A stretch of DNA of 63,437 bases, filler included, from Ministeria vibrans ATCC 50519 (GCA_943704425.1; 4 parts of 4 records of this genome joined end to end with filler, not necessarily neighbours in it), one strand, 5' to 3'; positions 740-63,437 are shown, counted from the whole stretch's first letter. A program made the numbers and translations. The notes: generated by a model not told the origin, from the letters alone.

Positions 740-1913
740 TTACAATAAGAGAGTGGCATGGGCGGCGTCACGCAGGTCGTCGATGATGCGACGACGCTGG
801 GAGCCAATTTGGCGGGCAAGATCGCGTTGTTCGAGGAGAGGCAAGTGTAGGTAGCGCGCAAGGAGGTCGCCGTCGACGATGTTCTTCTCGCGGTTGACAT
901 GCGGGTAAGGGTCGCGCGCAAGACGATAGGACTTTGGGTTCAGGCCGGCGCGGTGAGGCAAGAGCACGGTGAGCTTGGCGTGGAGCATCTGCAGACGACG
1001 GTAGGTGCTCTCGGGGAGCGGCAGGAGCGAGCAGACGCCACCGTCGAGGGTGCCCAGGACCGAGACAAAGCGCGACGACCGTTGTGGCACTGCACCACGA
1101 TAGGCTAGCACGGGGGCACAACGCAGACGCAAAATGGTGTTGACGTGCGCCCCAATGTGGATGTCGCCGACACGGATGAGCTTTTGACCGCCCATCGAAT
1201 CAGCATCTAAATGACGAGAGAAAAGACAAGGAGTTCAGTGATCGAGTGCGATTATTGTAGTGTGTACGATGGCGGTCGTAGTGAAAGATGACAGCGTTTT
1301 TGTTCTCGTCGGTGGCAAGGAAGGCCAACTGGTCGTCGTTGACCATAAACTCCACAGCATACGTGACCATGTGGTTGAAGTCGCGGCCAATGAAGGCAAG
1401 CGTGCGCCCGCGCTCGTTGTACATGACAAGGGTGATGCTGCTGTGCGAGTCGGCAAGTATGATGAACCGCTTAAGCGACACAATGCGGTGGATATACGCC
1501 TGTGTGTCGAGAAATGCCATGCCTTCGATGTCTTCGTTGTCCTCTGCCAGACGCCATACCATCGCCTGGGAGACACAGTGATGAATAACGTGCGTGTGTA
1601 TGTGTGTGTATGTGGGTGAGTGAGTGAGTGAGTGTGAGTCAGTCGGGGCCGTGAGAATAGTCGTATGTCTCTTACGCGTTGCCCATTGGCGGCAGTCACA
1701 AGATAGCCATTGCAGCTGTTGATGGCCGTGACGGGGAAGGTCTGGTCGCGCTTGACAAACTCGCGACGCACCAACAGCCGCAGTTTGCTGTCGGTCAACG
1801 AGTTGTCTGCCTCAGCCACAACAGAATTCACCCCAAACACATAAATCTACAAAAAGAGCGACATAGAAAAAAGGGAGAGAGAGAGAGTTAGTGAGCTATG
1901 TAAAAAAAACAGA

Positions 1914-54116: not shown

Positions 54117-54203
<87 letters not shown>

Positions 54204-54310
54204 TTGTTTCTTTCTTTCTATCTTCTTTCTCACTTTCTTTCTCTTCTTCTTCTACTTCTCTCTCTCTCTCTCACACACACGCACTTGATACTTTGCGTCT
54301 CCCTTCTTAC

Positions 54311-54975
54311 TCCATCAATCAGAGGCACTCCAACACGTCGACATAACACTCCAAACTGTGCAGTCAAGTCAGCAACTCTCATGTCCGCCCAAAGTGCCTA
54401 AGTGCAGCCCAAAAAGAAGAAGAAGAAGAAGAAGAAGAAGAAGAAGAAGAAGGAGAAGAAGGAGAAGAAGTCAGTCAGTGAGTGTGAGAGTGTCAACAAC
54501 GGAAAGGATTCAATACCAACTCCAGACCACCAGCGACAGAATAGCCTGATATTGCAGCCACCACAGGCTTACTCAAGTTCAGTCGCGTGGGGCCCATGGG
54601 TCCACGCTGCACGTCGTCGGCCGGCTGAAGGTCATTGTCGAATGATTGCAAATCAGCGCCAGCGCAAAAATCACCCCCATCACCAAACAAGACGGCGACG
54701 CTGCTGTTTGGAGACGCTTCAAACTCAAGGAAAGCCTTGGTGAGCGCGCGTGCCGTCGCTTGATTCACGGCATTCCGTCGTCGCGGACGACAGAAGCGGA
54801 TCAGAGACACCGGTCCGATTTGCTCTGACGAGACGGTGGCCACATCGTTTTCTGTTGCGTACACCACAGGCGCTGATCTCTGGTAATCACATGTTCCTGT
54901 CGAAGATGATGATGACGACGACGACGACGAGGAGGTTAAGTGACGTCTGAGGAGAGAGAGACGACGAAGCGACAT
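54311..54975 (-). CDS. Enoyl-CoA hydratase/crotonase with a mitochondrial-type presequence, 3'-truncated
   Basis: MSLRRLSLLRRHL..; RPRRRNAVN; FCAGADL; GPMGPTR..KPVVAAISGYSVAGGLEL|ALWADMRVA..FGVLCRRVGVPLIDG. Confidence 0.9.
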
Positions 54976-55147
54976 ACAACGAATATCAACTGATGAACTT
55001 GACAAAATAAGAGTGTAAAACTGAAACTTTGGATTATTATAATAATTATTATGATAAAATGAGTCGATCCAAAATATTTTTTATTTAGCAATCCTGTTTC
55101 AGACTTTCAGTTTCTTTGTTCACTTGCTCTTCACTCTGGCCTGGGCG

Positions 55148-58100
55148 ATGACCATATCGCTGTTCCTGCCCGAAGGCGGCGACCCCATTCTCTTCCCCAC
55201 GCCAAAGTTCGTCAAACTTTCCGCTCTCCAGCCCCGTCTGAATGCGCTGTTGGTGTCGCTTCGCGCCCGCAACGGGGGCTTTGAGTACCCGCCCCTCGAG
55301 GATGGTCGCTTTGGCATCGAAGGTGACGATTTGCCCGCCGGCGCTTACGATATTGTGACGGCACGTCTCTCTCATTCCAACTCCAACAACGTGTCGACGA
55401 CGCCCGGTCTGCCGCTCCTCCTCCCAGTGTCGACCATGGACATCTCGCGCGCCTTTGTTGCCACACGCGCCATTGTCACCGAGCCTCGTCACAGTCTGTC
55501 CGACGCGCAAAGTCTCGCGAATCTTCTCGACGACTATGCCGACTTTGGCGCCGTTGCCTTGTCCGTGCCCGACGCCGTCGTGCGCCTTCTCGTCACCGTC
55601 TCCCCCGAAGTTGTCACCGTGGCCATCGATGCGTCGCGTCTCACCCGCCAACTCCTTGCCCCGAGCGCCCCTCCCGCCCCGTACAAGTCGGGTCGACTCC
55701 ACGCACTCGCGTTGGAAATTTCCCAAACCATTCCCATTCAGACCCTCCTGCAGCTTTGTACGGACTCCCATCTTCTCGACAACCACGCCTGCTACGACCT
55801 CATCAGTGACCATCAGTCGTCCATCGCAAAGGACCGCGTCCAAAGCGCCGACACCAAACAGCCCCCTTCGTCGACAGGAGACTTGCCATCGGCCGTCTCA
55901 AGCATCACTCCAACCTCTTCAGGCTCAAGTTCGCGTGGTTTTGGTGCACGCGCAGTCGCTGCATTTCGCTCCGTGATTCACCACGAGTCATCATCACCAT
56001 CATCATCATCATCATCGACGTCGGCAGCGCCCACCGGCTCATCTCAAAGTCATGGCTCAGGTGCGGCTGCTTCTTCCGCCGCCACCACCGCCGCGCCATC
56101 GTCCCCGACTCATTTGGTCGCTGACGACATCCATGAGAACACACATCGCAGGCTTTTGTTTACAGGCATATCGTTGAGTGGCATGGTTGCGCACACGGCG
56201 GCACTGCTGGCTCGCGACGCCGCTCAGTCGCGTGACATTACCGTTCGCTGCGTCACATTTGGCGCACCCTTCTTTGCCTCGTCCGAAATCGGTGCGCACG
56301 TCGACACAGCATGTGACACGTCTGCCGACGCCCACGTCAACGTGTGCCACCGTGACGACGCAGCTATTGCCGCCATCAATTTGTGCATGCGCGCCCACCA
56401 TGCCCAGCTCGTCAGTGGCGACACCAGCTTTAACGTTGCCCAACTTGCCGATGCCGTCACTACCCTCATTGGCGACGCTTCTGATGCCTCTCTGGCACGT
56501 GCCTTTGATATGTATACCCAAATGCGCCCCGAAGCGCTTCGTCTTATCGAGACCAATTTGCCGTCGGATGCCGGTGCTCACTCGCCCGTCGGCTGGTTCT
56601 CCTTTCGCTCCCACGACTCCGACCCGTCCGACAGCGACACCGTTTCCTCGACCACAGCAACCAACGCGACTCTCACAACCCTTGCTACAAGCTCCGCCAC
56701 CAATGTCATTTCGACCACAGCGGCAGCAGCATTAGCACACACTGCCAACGTCGGCGCCCACTCTGTCCCGACCATGGCCACAGCCACCAGCCCACCTCCC
56801 GCCTTGCTTTCCAACAATGCTCCTATCAACCTGGTGCTTGAAGACGACTGCGAGCGTATGATTGAGTCGGTGGCCATTCTCAAGCGCAACCTTCGGCGTC
56901 ACCGTACTCTTGCTTGGTCTCCAGAACTCTGCCAGAAAATCAGCTGGCGCTACTCGTGCGAAGTGTCCCCTTTACAGCTGCTCACTCGGCCGCGCATTGA
57001 CCGAGTCGAAATTGTCCAGACGCCTGTCCGTGCCGACGTGGTCGTCACCGGCTTGGGCCTCGAACCACTGTTACGTCGTGCCGACGAGCCGGCGTCGCTG
57101 ATTCTCGACGAGACCGCCTTTGATCTGACCGATGGAAATGTGATCCTTGTGAGTCGTGCCACCACCACCGACGTGCGTTTTAGTGTGCTCGGCTGTCGCT
57201 ACCTGAGCGAGGGTACCGTTCAGGTGCGCACCCTCTTTGGCGAGACCCCTTTGTTCACCGTCGCCCCAAAGCAAGTGCGCTTTGTCGACGATGTCTCACC
57301 CTCGGCCATGATGCACGCACGCGTCGACGCCGAACTGTTACGCACCGTCTTTCTGCGCGGTCTCATCTCTCTCAGCTGTGTGCAACAGCGACAACAACAG
57401 AGAAACATCACCGGCCTGAATCTTTCCTCTGCTTTGCCTCGCTCGTCGCTGTCGTCACCTTCGCCCACTTCGTCCCCGTCCGTCTCCCGCAACACAAGCT
57501 GCAACTCGAATGCCGCCTGGCTTGCCTCTCACGAACTCCTCGCACTTTTGTGTGACCTCGAACAACACTTGTGCGGCAAAACCCAGCTTCGAGCACACCT
57601 CGATGATTTTGCGGCGCGCTGTGCCGCCTCGGACGACCCCGACGTCGCGGCCACCAGCAGCACGCACCTCATCAAGCCCGCAAATCGGATCATCACAAGC
57701 ATTGTCGCGCGTCTCACCGAACCTTTGGTCATTGAGTACCATTCTACGGTGGGACGCGCACTTCGCAAAATCTTTGGAGGTCTCGGTGTGGTGACTGGCT
57801 CGGTGCTATCCATTGTGGGCGCACTTGCCCTCTTGCCGGGCTTCTTCCTCATGAGTCCCGGCTTGCGGCAGATTATGCGGCGCAACGGTGACAGTACCGA
57901 CGAGAATGGTGCATCCTTCTCCATGAGCACCGGTGCAGGCCTGCTCTTTTTGCCGGGTGCTATTGCGTCGTTGCCGGGCGCCGCTGTGTTGGGCGCCGGC
58001 ATGATGATTGTGTCGGCGAGTCGGCGTGGTCTCACCGATCGCACGACGCAGCAGTACTCGCAAATTCTGCGACTGCTCATCACCATGCTGGGAGGCGATC

Positions 58101-61100
58101 CATCCCTTGTGCTTGACGAAGTGCCCTCTCTTGAGGTTGCCCTTGCCACTGCGTACACGACCGCGAGTGGTGGTGGAACCCTTGCGACGGCCACCGAGAA
58201 GGATGTTGCGCGTGTTCTCGACAGCCTTGCCAAAGGTCGTCGTCGCAATGCCCCTTCCAGTAGCTCTCTGACAGCTGGTGGTGCTGGCAGTGGCAGTGGC
58301 ACTGGTAGCAGTGGTGGAGGCGGAGGCGGAGGTGGTGCTTCGTCGTCGCCTCAACACTCGTCGCATGCGCCACATCAACAACTCTTGTCGTCGTCGGTGT
58401 CGCCCCTCGCCACCTCCCAATCTCCCTCCATGGTCACGGCTATTGAGCCCATCATTTCCTTTTTCCCGTCTCCCTCACCCCAACGCTCGCTTAACGATGC
58501 TGTCACGGGTACACCACCGGCCAACACGAGCGACGCCACCAACACCAGTGGCAATGGTCGTGCTGCCTCGCCCACCTCGTCGATGCGCTCGTCGTCACCA
58601 CCCCCCGCAGCGCCCGCCGAGGTCCCCTCGAACATTCAGGGCATTCGATGCTACTCGACGGCTCAGTCTGAGTCGCGCACCAAATTGCGCCAGTGGCTCG
58701 TCACGGCGGGTCGGTTATCGCGCATGCGACGTGTGCTCGAGCGACAGATTGTTGTGGGCTTTGTTGGTGTGCACAACTCGGGCAAGAGTACCTTTGTGTC
58801 GCGTCTCTTTGGAGTCGATGCCGACACGGACATTTTGCGTCGCACCGAGTACCCCCAACTGTACAATGTGTTTGGAGGCGGGGATGCAAGTCGTATGCAC
58901 ATCTCCTCTGCCTCCAGTGACGTCCCCGTGACACTGGACGTCATTGACTTTCCCGGAAGCACCGATCAGCGTCAGCACACGGCCCACATGACCGAGCGGT
59001 TTGCCGGTGCCGCGACGCTCTTTGTGTGTGTGTTTGCGGCCGGCCACATTGCCGAACCCGAACGGCGTGTCGTGAGCATGGCCAAGCTGGCGGGACGCGA
59101 CTTTGTCGTGCTGGTGAACAAGGCGGATGCGATTCGTCACGAACTCGCAGTGCGCGAAGAGTCCATTCGCGACTCGTACGCCTCCGTCCTAGGTGTTTCG
59201 CGCGACCTCATTTTCTTTGTGTCGGCGCACGAGTCGTCGTCGCTCGCGGTGGTGCGCGCCATCCTGTGGAAGGCTATGCGTTTTCTGCTGCCCGACGAGC
59301 AGGCGACACTTGCCTTTGCCATACTTCCACGCACGCTGCGTGAGCAGCTCGTGGACACACACGGGGGCCACAGCGAACACCTTACGAGTGCCGTGACGTC
59401 GCTGCTCGACAACATGCATGAAGTGGACGCGCAAGCGGTGAGCACGCGCATTGCAGCCATGCTGTCCCGCGAAGAAGCGGAAGCAAGGGACGCAGCAGCG
59501 TCGGCGGCGGCTGCACGAGAAGCAACGTTGGCGGCTACATCAGCAGCAGCAGCTGCTGCTGCTGCTCAGTCGACAACGACGCAAACCATCCCCGCCCAGC
59601 TGGCCGACAACCTTGTCTCTATGGGCTTTCCACCATCGCTGGTGGTGGCTGTGTTGCAGTCGATGCAGCTGCAACAGTACCACCAAGTGCTCGAGGCAGT
59701 ACAGCATCAGACACGTCAGCAGCTCTCGTCCTTTTTGCAGACGACGAATCAGGATCAGCAGCGCCACTCGTCGACGACTCCGTCCGCCGAGACAACAACC
59801 ACACCAGAGGTTTCATCGGACCCCGTCACTGCCGCGGTTCCCGCTAATGCTGCTGCCGCTCCTTCGGCAGTTGCGCGCGCCTCGCCCTATTTAGGTCTGC
59901 TGTCCCTTCTGGTGGACCCCGATGCATTGCAAGCGGCTCAAATCAATGTGCAAAATGCGGCTCTTGACATTCTTGGTGAGGCGATGCGACTGCGCGAGAT
60001 GGCTCTGGATCCCGCACAATTGCCGCGGCTCGTTTCGTCGTCGATGCCTGCTTTGTCGTCGTTGTCGCCGTCGCCTTCTGCGACTGCCTCGGTATCATCG
60101 TCGGCAGGGGTGCCCGCCGTGACGGAGGAACTCGTCGACCGGGCGCTTTTTGAAGTGCTCAAGAAGACGCCATCGGCCATTCGCTCACGGTCCTTTGAGA
60201 CGCTGTTTGCTGAGATGCTCGCGCACGAACTGCGCAGTGTGAGTGCCAGTTCGGCGGATGGTTCTGCGGCGGCCGCGGCTGCGGCGGCGCAGACGTCGAC
60301 GCTGAACAATGCCATCACGGGCATTCAGCTGCTGGGGTCGTTGCGCCTTGGCGTGCGCTTTCGCCATGTGCGTCCGCCGCATCGAGGTGTGCGTGAGGTG
60401 TACCCTGACTTTGACAACACCATGTCGTTTGAGCAGCGCGTCGCACTGTTTCATGCGCATCTGAAGAAGCTTGGTCTGGGGCACGGGAGCGAGGCGCAAA
60501 TGCTTGTAGACCCGTCGAATGTGCTGGAGAGCACCATTTCGTCGCTGAGTTCGGTCGACGACATCAAATTGTTGCGGTCGGTGATGCGTGTGAAGCTGAC
60601 GGTGGGCACTGCGGTCGACGTGAACGGGGTGTTGCGTTCGGTCATGACGAGCTGTGCGACTGCGATTCGCGAGGGCAAGCAGAGCTGCTTTGCCGTCTCC
60701 GACGACGGCCATGTGTACTTTGGCGGGCCCATGGCGCACCGAGATGCGACGCAGGTGGCACAAGTGTATCGTGCGGTTGGGCGTATGGTTGGTCTGGTGT
60801 TGGGCCAGCGTCAGGCTCGCGCTACCTTTCCCGCCAACTTCTCGTTGCCTATCTTCAAGTTGATTCTCGGCCAACAGCTAACCATGGACGATCTGGATTT
60901 GGTCGACTCGGGTCTGTGCTCATCGATCAAGCAGGTGTGCATGATGGACAGTGCCTCGGTAGCGGATTTGGACCTGCGCTTTTGCGTTGACCTCCCCGTG
61001 CTCACCGAGACGTCCACGACGACCACGAACACGTACGACTTGGTCAAGGGCGGTGCAGAGGTGCCCGTGAGTGCTGGCAACCGACTTGGCTATCTGGAGC

Positions 61101-61585
61101 GTCGTGTGCGCTTCCATCTTGGTATGGACTTGCCGCTCGATCTGTTTGTCGCGGGTGTCGCCGACTGTGTGCCACGTGAGCTTTTGACCGTGTTCACGCC
61201 CGAGCAGCTCATGATTCTTGTGAATGGGCGACCGACCGTGTCTGCGTCCGAGCTGCGCGCCGGCATGCGTGTGGGCTCGACGGCACCCGCTGCGCACATT
61301 CTTGAGTGGTTTTGGGAGGTGCTCGAGGAGATGAGCGACGACCAGCGAGCGCTTCTGCTCGTCTTCATGACGGGCTCGCCCTCGTTGCCACCCGGTGGCT
61401 GTGCCGCACTGCGTCCGCCCCTGACCATCACTCGGAGTTCGCGCGAGGGTTCAGCGTCGCTGCCCACGGCACACACTTGCTTTAATCGACTTGACTTGCC
61501 GGCGTACGAGTCCAAGGAGGCCCTCAAGAATGGTCTTGAGTGGGCGCTCGGTGGCTGCAGTGCTGCTGATTTTGGGTTTTTGTAA
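55148..61585 (+). CDS. Giant intronless lipase-like + membrane hairpin + P-loop GTPase + UBA + HECT E3 ligase (~2145 aa)
   Basis: LLFTGISLSG..CVTFGAP..NVCHRDD (class-3 lipase-like); GVHNSGKST, DFPG and NKAD (G1/G3/G4); LVSMGFP (UBA); WFWEVL..LLVFMTGS..LP..LPTAHTCFNRLDLPAY..GFL* (HECT). First ATG at 55148. Confidence 0.88.
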   Translation: MTISLFLPEGGDPILFPTPKFVKLSALQPRLNALLVSLRARNGGFEYPPLEDGRFGIEGDDLPAGAYDIVTARLSHSNSNNVSTTPGLPLLLPVSTMDISRAFVATRAIVTEPRHSLSDAQSLANLLDDYADFGAVALSVPDAVVRLLVTVSPEVVTVAIDASRLTRQLLAPSAPPAPYKSGRLHALALEISQTIPIQTLLQLCTDSHLLDNHACYDLISDHQSSIAKDRVQSADTKQPPSSTGDLPSAVSSITPTSSGSSSRGFGARAVAAFRSVIHHESSSPSSSSSSTSAAPTGSSQSHGSGAAASSAATTAAPSSPTHLVADDIHENTHRRLLFTGISLSGMVAHTAALLARDAAQSRDITVRCVTFGAPFFASSEIGAHVDTACDTSADAHVNVCHRDDAAIAAINLCMRAHHAQLVSGDTSFNVAQLADAVTTLIGDASDASLARAFDMYTQMRPEALRLIETNLPSDAGAHSPVGWFSFRSHDSDPSDSDTVSSTTATNATLTTLATSSATNVISTTAAAALAHTANVGAHSVPTMATATSPPPALLSNNAPINLVLEDDCERMIESVAILKRNLRRHRTLAWSPELCQKISWRYSCEVSPLQLLTRPRIDRVEIVQTPVRADVVVTGLGLEPLLRRADEPASLILDETAFDLTDGNVILVSRATTTDVRFSVLGCRYLSEGTVQVRTLFGETPLFTVAPKQVRFVDDVSPSAMMHARVDAELLRTVFLRGLISLSCVQQRQQQRNITGLNLSSALPRSSLSSPSPTSSPSVSRNTSCNSNAAWLASHELLALLCDLEQHLCGKTQLRAHLDDFAARCAASDDPDVAATSSTHLIKPANRIITSIVARLTEPLVIEYHSTVGRALRKIFGGLGVVTGSVLSIVGALALLPGFFLMSPGLRQIMRRNGDSTDENGASFSMSTGAGLLFLPGAIASLPGAAVLGAGMMIVSASRRGLTDRTTQQYSQILRLLITMLGGDPSLVLDEVPSLEVALATAYTTASGGGTLATATEKDVARVLDSLAKGRRRNAPSSSSLTAGGAGSGSGTGSSGGGGGGGGASSSPQHSSHAPHQQLLSSSVSPLATSQSPSMVTAIEPIISFFPSPSPQRSLNDAVTGTPPANTSDATNTSGNGRAASPTSSMRSSSPPPAAPAEVPSNIQGIRCYSTAQSESRTKLRQWLVTAGRLSRMRRVLERQIVVGFVGVHNSGKSTFVSRLFGVDADTDILRRTEYPQLYNVFGGGDASRMHISSASSDVPVTLDVIDFPGSTDQRQHTAHMTERFAGAATLFVCVFAAGHIAEPERRVVSMAKLAGRDFVVLVNKADAIRHELAVREESIRDSYASVLGVSRDLIFFVSAHESSSLAVVRAILWKAMRFLLPDEQATLAFAILPRTLREQLVDTHGGHSEHLTSAVTSLLDNMHEVDAQAVSTRIAAMLSREEAEARDAAASAAAAREATLAATSAAAAAAAAQSTTTQTIPAQLADNLVSMGFPPSLVVAVLQSMQLQQYHQVLEAVQHQTRQQLSSFLQTTNQDQQRHSSTTPSAETTTTPEVSSDPVTAAVPANAAAAPSAVARASPYLGLLSLLVDPDALQAAQINVQNAALDILGEAMRLREMALDPAQLPRLVSSSMPALSSLSPSPSATASVSSSAGVPAVTEELVDRALFEVLKKTPSAIRSRSFETLFAEMLAHELRSVSASSADGSAAAAAAAAQTSTLNNAITGIQLLGSLRLGVRFRHVRPPHRGVREVYPDFDNTMSFEQRVALFHAHLKKLGLGHGSEAQMLVDPSNVLESTISSLSSVDDIKLLRSVMRVKLTVGTAVDVNGVLRSVMTSCATAIREGKQSCFAVSDDGHVYFGGPMAHRDATQVAQVYRAVGRMVGLVLGQRQARATFPANFSLPIFKLILGQQLTMDDLDLVDSGLCSSIKQVCMMDSASVADLDLRFCVDLPVLTETSTTTTNTYDLVKGGAEVPVSAGNRLGYLERRVRFHLGMDLPLDLFVAGVADCVPRELLTVFTPEQLMILVNGRPTVSASELRAGMRVGSTAPAAHILEWFWEVLEEMSDDQRALLLVFMTGSPSLPPGGCAALRPPLTITRSSREGSASLPTAHTCFNRLDLPAYESKEALKNGLEWALGGCSAADFGFL

Positions 61586-61950
61586 TTATTGTTATCATTG
61601 TTTTTAAATAAAGAAATAAGTGTTGTACTCGTGTCAATACAAAACTGAAACAAACACCAAGGAAGCATCAATATAGAGCAGAGAGAGATTGGCAGAGATA
61701 GCCAGAGTGTTGGCATCAATATCGATTGAATTCAACTTCTTCATCAGAATATGTATCGATGAGTATTGAGTGATCAGTAAACTGACATAATAATTATTTA
61801 GTTTTTTACCGGTAACTAGTAACTACTGACTGCGGCTCTATAGTAAGTGAATAAATTATAAAGTGATCTCATCCAATACAATAAATCTCAATTACACTTA
61901 ATATTAATCATACAATTTTTTGCTGTCATTTGCAACACTCTACCGGCAAC

Positions 61951-62710
61951 ATGGGCTCGCATGACAATGCAAACCGCGAACGAGAGTATACGATGGGAGG
62001 CTGAAGGCTCTGTGTGCTTATACAACCAACCTTTTTCTTTTCATAGGCCGACTGTCAAACCAAAGTATCCGCGCAAGGAATCGGAACGAAAGTGCTTCAG
62101 AGTGGTCAAGAAGACCGGCAAGGTGGGCACGCGTCTCGTCACGCCCTTTCAGTTTCGTGTTTACGACGGTACACGCAAAAGCAGAATCGCGTCTCGTTCG
62201 TGTCGCTCTGGCGCCCAACTCATGACCTCGTACGCTCGCATTTGTAGCAACCCTCGCCATTCCCGAAGGCCAGGTGTCTACCTATGGTGAGATTGCCAAG
62301 AAGATTGGCTCGCATGCGCGTGCAGGTGCGGAAATACATTTTGTGGGGGAAGGGTGGTTAGGGTTAGGGTTAGGGTTAGGGTTGGTGTGACTGACTCGTT
62401 TTGCGTGTAGTTGGACAAGCTTTGCGCCACAACCCCTTTGCACCCGAAGTTCCCTGCCACCGCGTTGTTGCTGCAACGGTATCTCTCACGAACATGCCCT
62501 GTGTGTTGTGATTTGTGTTGTGTTGCTCTCTGTAGGGATTCATCGCTGGCTTCAATGGCCAGTGGGGCGCCGGAGCGCTCATTGATGAGAAAAAGGTAAG
62601 GTGGCGGACGAAGAGGGCGCGTTGTGATGCATTGCATTGTGTTTTAGGCTCTCTTGAGGAAGGAGGGTGTTTCGTTTGACAAAGATTCCGTCTTGATTAA
62701 GAAGAAGTGA
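61951..62710 (+). CDS. MGMT: O6-alkylguanine-DNA alkyltransferase (C-terminal domain only), multi-exon
   Basis: TPFQFRVY..IPEGQVSTYGEIA..ARA|VGQALRHNPFAPEVPCHRVV (active-site PCHR); stop at 62708-62710. Confidence 0.88.
62356..62383 (+). repeat. (TTAGGG)4 inside an MGMT intron
   Basis: GGTTAGGGTTAGGGTTAGGGTTAGGGTT within intron 62326-62410. Confidence 0.85.
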
Positions 62711-62810
62711 CCAAATCGAGTCGTGTAAATACAAGAAAAGCAACGATGCTACTTATGATTTTACTTATGAAAGCATGATGAAGTCCCATTCATATTTCAT
62801 GCGGGTTGGT

Positions 62811-62843
<33 letters not shown>

Positions 62844-62916
62844 AGAGCTCGTCTGAGACTCGTCTCTGATCGTAATTCGCAACTAAGTCAACTCATAACT
62901 ATTTTATTTGCTTTCG

Positions 62917-63319
62917 ATGGGCGCTATTGAATCTCGCCCAGCGTGTGCTGTCGGAGACCTTTTGAGAGCTCGTCCGTCCAAGTGCAACACTGGCGGCTGG
63001 CCGTGGGCGCTGCATGCGGGTCTGGCAGGCGAAGTAAGTTTGTGAATCTGATCAACTGTCGATCTTCACGCAACGACGCCTTCCGTCGTCTACGAGGCAC
63101 CCTTTGGTGTACAGATGGCGTGGTGGTGCTCAATAGCAGTGATTCTGTCGCTCTGCCTTTCTCTCTTTCTTCTCATTCTCTCAAATCTTTTCTTTTTTTC
63201 TCTTTTTTTTGTCATCCCTCTTTTGCGTTTGCACAGATCGAATGTGCGGTCTTTGTGTACACGCGTGCGCCCGGTGACTCGGCGGCTCTTGTTGATGCCG
63301 TTGCCAATGGCATTCATGT
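62917..63319 (+). CDS. Possible 5' part of an unidentified gene running off the window
   Basis: ATG near 62917, a polypyrimidine tract with CAG acceptor near 63236, and a GTACG donor near 63318; the frame is unresolved. Confidence 0.3.
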
Positions 63320-63437
63320 ACGTTGTTTGGGCGCAGAGAACCACTGACGAAAAACGGCTCATCTCTCCTTATGTTATATTTGGTCTCCTCTCAATGTGTG
63401 TGTGTGTGTCTTTGTGGTGTGTGTGTGTGTGTGTGTC

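Follow-up and report, generated by a model that had tools for sequence, protein, structure and literature searches.

A giant Ministeria vibrans gene encoding a HECT ubiquitin ligase with a lipase-like head, a putative membrane hairpin and a GTPase domain

The DNA of Ministeria vibrans ATCC 50519 analysed here (GCA_943704425.1; 4 parts of 4 records joined end to end with filler, 63,437 nucleotides in all and hereafter the window) contains a single open reading frame (ORF) in which a preliminary description, made from the sequence alone, had read a lipase-like domain, a membrane hairpin, a GTPase, a UBA-like motif and a HECT domain. This raises the question of whether such unlike domains really belong to one protein and, if so, what that protein would do. 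On the sequence comparisons below, the first part can be answered plainly: the protein is a member of a conserved family and not a chance fusion. For the second part, the reading we prefer, and to which we give an even chance of being right, is that of a complete intronless gene for a hairpin-anchored, cytosol-facing HECT ubiquitin ligase (E3), gated by its GTPase domain and by a lipase-like module that binds a ligand or a partner.

The ORF runs uninterrupted on the + strand from 55124 to 61585, with its first ATG at 55148, and comprises 2,145 codons followed by TAA, with no internal stops; an ORF of this length cannot be a chance occurrence. M1 is invariant in the N-terminal family alignment and the C-terminus likewise aligns with those of relatives. 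The GC content is 0.58–0.63 across the whole ORF, 0.47 upstream and 0.39 downstream, so that the ends of the gene coincide with a compositional change. Every motif quoted in the preliminary description was found in this one intronless frame, where it had been placed (Table 1). The interdomain linkers are long, Ser/Ala/Thr/Gly-rich and of low complexity, and are disordered in the AlphaFold prediction.

Judged from its sequence, the HECT domain is complete. Pfam PF00632 aligns with aa 1844–2137 (E = 4e-60; 204 bits against a cut-off of 23.9) over profile positions 11–300 of 306, and both lobes are covered. Sequence matches in the PDB extend from aa ∼1751 to 2142, with AREL1, SMURF2, NEDD4L and HUWE1 the best (E = 1e-32 to 1e-26) and E6AP and UBE3C weaker (∼1e-18). 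The catalytic Cys2111, within AHTCFN, aligns with the TCF of relatives, and the C-terminus, DFGFL, has a Phe at position −4, so that both the HECT Cys and the aromatic residue are present. The complete HECT domain with catalytic Cys and terminal GFL that had been read at the outset is thus confirmed.

To find relatives of the remainder, an exhaustive phmmer search was made with aa 1–1200 as query against 1.84 billion protein representatives. It returned 37 proteins, the best with ∼30–33% identity and none above ∼33%. When phmmer was applied to each domain, ∼25 of the 37 (representatives at 50% identity) were seen to have the same order, namely lipase-like domain, middle domain, hairpin, GTPase and HECT, while the rest were fragments of this series. 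The named carriers are the choanoflagellates Codosiga hollandica, Salpingoeca kvevrii and S. infusionum, the amoebozoan Balamuthia mandrillaris (KAL6055612.1, annotated ‘hypothetical protein’), the chrysophyte Paraphysomonas and the vampyrellid Leptophrys vorax. All of these are phagotrophic or predatory protists, and no animal, fungus or plant is among the named sources. The other carriers come from environmental assemblies, where the gene is again one ORF, on contigs of 6 kb to 1 Mb, with neighbours of eukaryotic type (F-box, Ras, Atg4, split YchF). The same order in ∼25 distant relatives argues for a conserved family rather than a chance fusion, and this collinearity supports the earlier claim of a single-chain system. 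The possibility of transcription as separate genes, raised at the same time, is countered for the family by several relatives that are complete transcriptome ORFs, an argument that applies to the relatives.

Other searches added little to this set. Scanning metagenomes with a profile of the G domain gave only 3 additional loci, and the same profile found no relatives in viral and prokaryotic genome contigs. Word-index searches with the whole protein, aa 860–1430 or aa 1192–1400 returned generic HECT matches or none and failed to pick up the family. Architectures with lipase, GTPase or transmembrane parts go unmentioned in a eukaryote-wide survey of HECT proteins (PMC3673628), in keeping with the preliminary view that the architecture is unusual, and no description of the domain combination was found in the literature. 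This family of protist HECT ligases is thus apparently undescribed.

The head of the protein begins with a small β subdomain (aa 1–72), followed by a lipase-like domain that is split by disordered Ser/Ala-rich inserts at aa 212–331 and aa 491–563. Pfam Lipase_3 matches part of it (aa 327–405, profile 56–131 of 140) with 22.8–25.4 bits in searches of the whole protein and of excised pieces, against a cut-off of 22; no other Pfam family was found in aa 1–870. An AlphaFold2 (AF2) model of aa 1–870, built with 25 family sequences, had a predicted local distance difference test score (pLDDT) of 80–95 in its folded parts. With this head model, the top 15 PDB matches in Foldseek were all EDS1 chains, and fungal class-3 lipases came next. 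Alignment of aa 91–597 with EDS1 residues 6–330 by VIA gave Z scores of 21–23 over ∼262 residues at 3.1 Å and 19% identity, compared with 17–19 for fungal lipases and feruloyl esterase and 15–16 for plant PLA1. A VIA search over 48,161 representatives, independent of Foldseek, gave the same ranking (EDS1, Z 22.9). The model, the VIA scores of 17–23 and the Lipase_3 match agree on a class-3 α/β-hydrolase fold, as had been predicted for the N-terminal region.

The relation to EDS1 is also seen in sequence profiles. A profile of eight N-terminal family sequences, searched against the PDB, matched EDS1 over ∼200 residues with E = 1.4e-15, PAD4 with 1.9e-11 and SAG101 with 1.7e-4, while the Thermomyces (fungal) lipase reached only 0.016. 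A single relative, P0015, matched EDS1 and nothing else (E = 2.9e-5). The window protein by itself reaches only E = 0.65 to EDS1. On the profile and structural matches taken together, the lipase-like head is of EDS1 type, and the analogy with EDS1/PAD4 that had been drawn holds, in that these are the best profile and structural matches among solved structures. An EP domain was not found, the structural and profile alignments stopping at EDS1 residue ∼330; the protein therefore falls outside the EDS1 family, though its head domain is of EDS1 type. In the ESM Atlas, aa 1–601 matched generic Lipase_3 clusters only (score 0.85).

What the head does depends on its catalytic residues. The nucleophile elbow reads G-I-S-L-S-G, so that Ser342 is retained and the last Gly of GxSxG is replaced by Ser, exactly as first described. 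Ser342 and Asp404 occupy canonical positions in the family alignment; His585 was placed by structural-alignment offset only, to EDS1 H317, and lies in a His-x4-aromatic motif (HRTLAW) common with the relatives P0013 and P0036. A nearby His is present in P0012 and P0014, and the motif is missing from a large clade without the Ser. The nucleophile Ser is found in 9 of 26 alignment rows (the window protein, Codosiga, Balamuthia, P0015, P0051, P0016, P0018, P0021 and P0036). The other 17 have G, N, L, D, Y or H in its place, with the flanking FTG…SG.vAH..A conserved, and the canonical Asp is retained chiefly in the Ser-bearing group and its neighbours. Since the Ser has been lost in 17 of 26 rows, hydrolysis is not the function common to the family.

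An active lipase or phospholipase, bound to the membrane and coupled to ubiquitination so that the ligase works on the same membrane as the hydrolysed lipid, is accordingly a reading to be weighed at this point. The window copy, with Ser342, Asp404 and probably His585, may have residual esterase activity, its nearest relatives Codosiga, Balamuthia and P0015 have a canonical GHS elbow, and the Lipase_3 score exceeds the Pfam cut-off. Against this are the GxSxS elbow, the replacement of the Ser in most rows while the remainder of the domain is conserved, and the placing of His585 by offset. Furthermore, the closest relatives of the head, the EDS1 family, are described as functioning independently of the triad (Wagner et al. 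2013, as cited in PMC9153377). We consider an active lipase unlikely.

One relative has lost more than the lipase nucleophile. In P0017 (L004:8001-13748), an environmental sequence, the elbow reads GKYVSG, without the nucleophile Ser, and …NTANH… takes the place of the stretch with the HECT catalytic Cys, yet the ORF of 1,915 aa is intact; it may represent a pseudo-ligase paralogue.

Between the head and the GTPase lie an Ig-like β-sandwich, predicted where a beta-rich segment had been noted, and a helical bundle that runs into the hairpin. An EP-like identity of this bundle was considered and rejected, as it aligned with unrelated four-helix sensors (Z ∼7) and gave no alignment to the EDS1 EP domain. 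The two Gly-rich hydrophobic helices originally noted are borne out by hydropathy, with Kyte–Doolittle values of 2.11 for helix 1 and 1.81 for helix 2 of the window protein. Across 28 relatives that keep the hairpin, the two helices reach median maxima of 2.1 and 2.0, the loop has 10–27 residues and the stretch ahead of helix 1 carries a median net charge of +3. Together with the signature helix that follows, the hairpin is among the best conserved parts of the protein. A profile of the hairpin module matched no Pfam family and no solved structure.

The G domain was assigned from several directions. Pfam MMR_HSR1 matches aa 1203–1325 with 27.8–32.4 bits (cut-off 21.9), and there are weaker matches to GTP_EFTU and Dynamin_N, the latter partial, with 21.1 bits in the whole protein and 27.9 in an excised piece (cut-off 27). 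All five motifs G1–G5 are present, and the AF2 model of aa 840–1440 has pLDDT above 90 over the domain, which folds as a small G domain of ∼190 residues. In VIA the top match is EngB/YsxC (Z 17.4, 156–163 residues, 2.4–2.7 Å), and EngB, Era and IF2 (Z 17.4–16.6) as well as EngA rank above IIGP1 (15.5), to whose alignment the helices add nothing. A profile of six G-domain sequences matched Der/EngA (E = 4.6e-6) and septins (2e-4) in the PDB, and also EngB, HflX and Era; no dynamin, mitofusin or GBP was matched. Foldseek, given the hairpin and G-domain model, placed GM4951/IRG, mitofusin 1/2, GIMAP and FeoB near-equal (E ∼4e-6). The dynamin/mitofusin/IRG affinity that this raised was rejected on the VIA ranking and the profile search, and the domain lacks the ∼300-aa extent of the dynamin-superfamily large GTPases, which are not its best match. 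Sequence and model thus indicate that the G domain is a divergent Era/EngA/EngB/septin-like member of the TRAFAC class and not a dynamin-type large GTPase; the TRAFAC assignment first made stands, whereas the accompanying comparison with GBP/IRG is not supported.

Within the family, G1, G2, G3 and G5 are conserved. G4 is NKxD in some relatives and NQxD or NHxD in many (e.g. P0016, P0017, P0022, P0026 and P0030), and P0036 has NTTP. A motif particular to the family, AGHxAxPE, does not vary at its Gly, His, Ala, Pro and Glu across six aligned sequences and is kept in most, though not all, of 27 relatives; we are not aware of an equivalent elsewhere among GTPases.

The linker between GTPase and HECT contains the LVSMGFP that had been called UBA-like. 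The motif is indeed there, but a UBA domain is not supported at the Pfam cut-off (17.0 bits against 22.4, profile 6–25 of 37; 14–17 bits for UBA-clan models), and the segment has no similarity to the UPL/HUWE1-type proteins fetched for comparison. An MG[FY]-centred motif occurs in the same linker of five relatives, those named being Balamuthia (twice), Leptophrys, P0032 and P0048, and Balamuthia too has a sub-threshold UBA match. A degenerate UBA- or CUE-like helix pair in this linker is possible. Of the six domain assignments made at the outset, the other five are borne out.

Table 1. Features of the HECT gene and its product (window coordinates; aa, residues of the protein)
Feature	Residues (aa)	Nucleotides	Strand	Basis or remark
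Complete single-exon coding sequence	2,145 aa + stop	55148..61585	+	M1 and …FGFL align with relatives' ends; GFL at C-terminus
Class-3 lipase-like α/β-hydrolase, EDS1 type	91–597	55418..56938	+	AF2, VIA, family profile, Pfam Lipase_3
FTGISLSG	from 338	from 56159	+	
Nucleophile elbow GISLSG	340–345	56165..56182	+	Family alignment; Ser342 kept, GxSxS instead of GxSxG
CVTFGAP	from 368		+	
HRDD	from 401		+	
Asp404, canonical acid position of class-3 lipase triad	404	56357..56359	+	Family alignment
His585, candidate triad His	585	56900..56902	+	Offset to EDS1 H317; His-x4-aromatic motif
Ig-like β-sandwich	613–712	56984..57283	+	AF2; VIA Z 6–8 to Ig/IPT-like modules, common fold only
Helical bundle	718–857	57299..57718	+	AF2; VIA Z ∼7, not diagnostic
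Gly/Pro-rich hydrophobic helical hairpin	helix 1 875–906, loop 907–929, helix 2 930–957	57770..58018	+	
Family-signature helix YxQILKxLLxLLGGDPxxVxDExPxLE	970–996	58055..58135	+	After hairpin; alignments
TRAFAC G domain	1194–1384	58727..59299	+	Pfam MMR_HSR1, alignments, AF2, VIA, profile against PDB
G1 GVHNSGKST	1207–1215	from 58766	+	
G2 RTE	1232–1234		+	
G3 DFPG	1267–1270		+	
Family motif AGHIAEPE	1298–1305	59039-59062	+	After β-4
G4 NKAD	1324–1327		+	
G5 SA	1359–1360		+	
UBA-like motif LVSMGFPPSLVVAVLQS, tentative	1489–1505 (LVSMGFP from 1489)	59612..59662	+	Sub-threshold Pfam UBA
HECT domain	∼1760–2145	60425..61582	+	Pfam, PDB matches, Cys conserved
AHTCFN	from 2108	from 61469	+	
Catalytic Cys2111	2111	61478-61480	+	In AHTCFN

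In the mechanism that we prefer, the protein would be anchored in an endomembrane by its hairpin. With two helices in the membrane, both flanks would lie on the same side, and since a HECT domain needs cytosolic E2∼ubiquitin, the globular domains would all face the cytosol. The G domain, with G1–G5 intact, probably binds GTP and would serve as a nucleotide-dependent switch or dimeriser, its state allowing ubiquitination of proteins on the anchoring membrane by the C-terminal HECT domain. The lipase-like head would serve mainly in regulation or in the binding of a ligand or partner, as in EDS1/PAD4, and not as an obligatory lipase, a role proposed because most relatives have lost the nucleophile.

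Several considerations weigh against this mechanism. Membrane insertion, topology, GTP binding and interdomain coupling are all inferred. The conserved Pro-Gly pairs mean that the hairpin could be monotopic (re-entrant) or a buried helical hairpin. The variation in G4 suggests that nucleotide specificity may vary within the family. The plausible triad of the window copy fits an active enzyme and a pseudoenzyme equally. Finally, the proximity to EDS1 holds among solved structures, and a Lipase_3 subfamily of unsolved structure might be closer.

The preliminary description had gone further, to a ligase for the surveillance of phagosomes or pathogens. Such a protein would detect, through its lipase-like head, a lipid or small molecule that signals danger on a vacuole or lipid droplet, oligomerise by means of its GTPase and then cover the target with ubiquitin through its HECT domain, making an innate-immune sensor and effector in one chain. 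The closest solved relatives of the head are plant immune nodes (EDS1, PAD4 and SAG101), the named carriers are without exception phagotrophic or predatory, and the distribution is patchy and the low-complexity linkers divergent, as would fit a gene that is not housekeeping and is possibly driven by conflict. However, the EP domain, the ligand-binding part of EDS1 heterodimers, is missing, the G domain belongs to none of the GBP, IRG and dynamin types, and the link with phagotrophy rests on few named taxa. On balance, a surveillance function is a doubtful proposition.

A hairpin adjoining a G domain also recalls the layout of mitofusin and atlastin, so that the protein might instead tether or remodel an organelle membrane while its HECT domain turns over local proteins, as an organelle-dynamics or quality-control factor. 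The Foldseek matches, with mitofusin 1/2, GM4951/IRG and GIMAP among the best, point the same way. In contrast, VIA favours EngB, Era and IF2 over IIGP1, the profile matches EngA and septins and no dynamin-family proteins, the G domain has only ∼190 residues, and named sources without an animal, fungus or plant are contrary to a core housekeeping role; we regard this explanation as very unlikely. The chance that the gene is an assembly chimera, or neighbouring genes read through as one ORF, is negligible: a join might in principle be concealed in one of the long low-complexity linkers and nothing else was found for it, whereas the composition is uniform across the ORF and the same order recurs in ∼25 independent sequences, including complete transcriptome ORFs and single ORFs on contigs.

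The hairpin-anchored, GTPase-gated ligase that we prefer to these alternatives can be set beside known systems. With EDS1/PAD4/SAG101 it has in common the class-3 lipase-like fold, a helical insertion that follows the acid strand and precedes the next one, PxGxyxF, and an uneven retention of the catalytic residues, seen also among PAD4 and SAG101 relatives. It differs from them in lacking an EP domain, in that the domain heads a 2,145-aa putative membrane-anchored GTPase–HECT protein, in being carried by protists rather than seed plants and in having no known heterodimer partner. The bilobed HECT domain, with catalytic Cys and Phe at −4, resembles those of the Nedd4/HUWE1/AREL1 group, and the possible UBA-like motif upstream would parallel HUWE1/UPL1; unlike that group, the protein has no C2 or WW domain, and it has none of the N-terminal domains of its plant UPL1/UPL2 matches (Pfam). 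The compact ∼190-residue G domain with G1–G5 is like that of Era, EngA (Der), EngB (YsxC) and septins, but lies within a giant E3, has its own AGHxAxPE motif and often has NQxD/NHxD at G4 in relatives, and there are no KH or ribosome-binding partner domains.

A nucleotide-hydrolysing switch and a ubiquitin ligase are also combined in one polypeptide in RNF112/ZNF179 and RNF213, the former with C-terminal membrane helices. Their ligase domains are of RING or RZ type and their NTPase modules GBP-like or AAA+, and neither protein has a HECT or a lipase-like domain. The likeness would be functional only, with no homology implied.

The ORF lies in the piece of the window that spans 54117–63437, where it has two neighbours. 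Upstream, an exon of an enoyl-CoA hydratase/isomerase gene (54493–55005, − strand; ECH_1, E = 5e-17, profile 6–108 of 251) is divergent from the HECT gene, the remainder of the hydratase gene heading towards or past the microsatellite-rich left end of the piece. Downstream, an MGMT-like gene (O6-methylguanine-DNA methyltransferase; 62250–62707, + strand), searched one exon at a time, has at least four very short exons and GT-AG introns of ∼55–85 bp. Exons 62250–62324 and 62410–62478 match consecutive stretches (11–36 and 37–58) of the MGMT DNA-binding profile PF01035, and the latter contains the PCHRV active-site motif. This split neighbour indicates that the genes of this eukaryote can have spliceosomal introns, whereas the HECT gene has none. 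Four TTAGGG telomere-type repeats stand in tandem within an intron of the MGMT-like gene (62358–62381), and (CA/GT)n and (AAG)n microsatellites occur between genes and at both ends of the piece (54117–54205, 54415–54470, 62815–62835 and 63398–63437).

The EDS1-type lipase-like domain is regarded as an invention of seed-plant immunity. A broader proposal, speculative and in our estimate distinctly unlikely, is that it represents an older eukaryotic lineage of non-catalytic sensors, an ancestral module common with plant EDS1, which in phagotrophs would be joined in one chain with a hairpin, a GTP switch and a HECT domain that marks with ubiquitin the membranes of phagosomes or of vacuoles containing prey or parasites. 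Whatever its origin, which can be tested by phylogeny, the kinship of the head with EDS1/PAD4/SAG101 offers a non-plant comparison for a domain of debated role. HECT ligases are classed by their N-terminal targeting domains, and the combination of a hairpin, a GTPase and a lipase-like head would amount to a new regulatory logic, that of nucleotide-gated, membrane-resident ubiquitination. To date the family is restricted to free-living phagotrophs, among them the human pathogen Balamuthia, and this distribution suggests that it takes part in the handling of membranes or prey.

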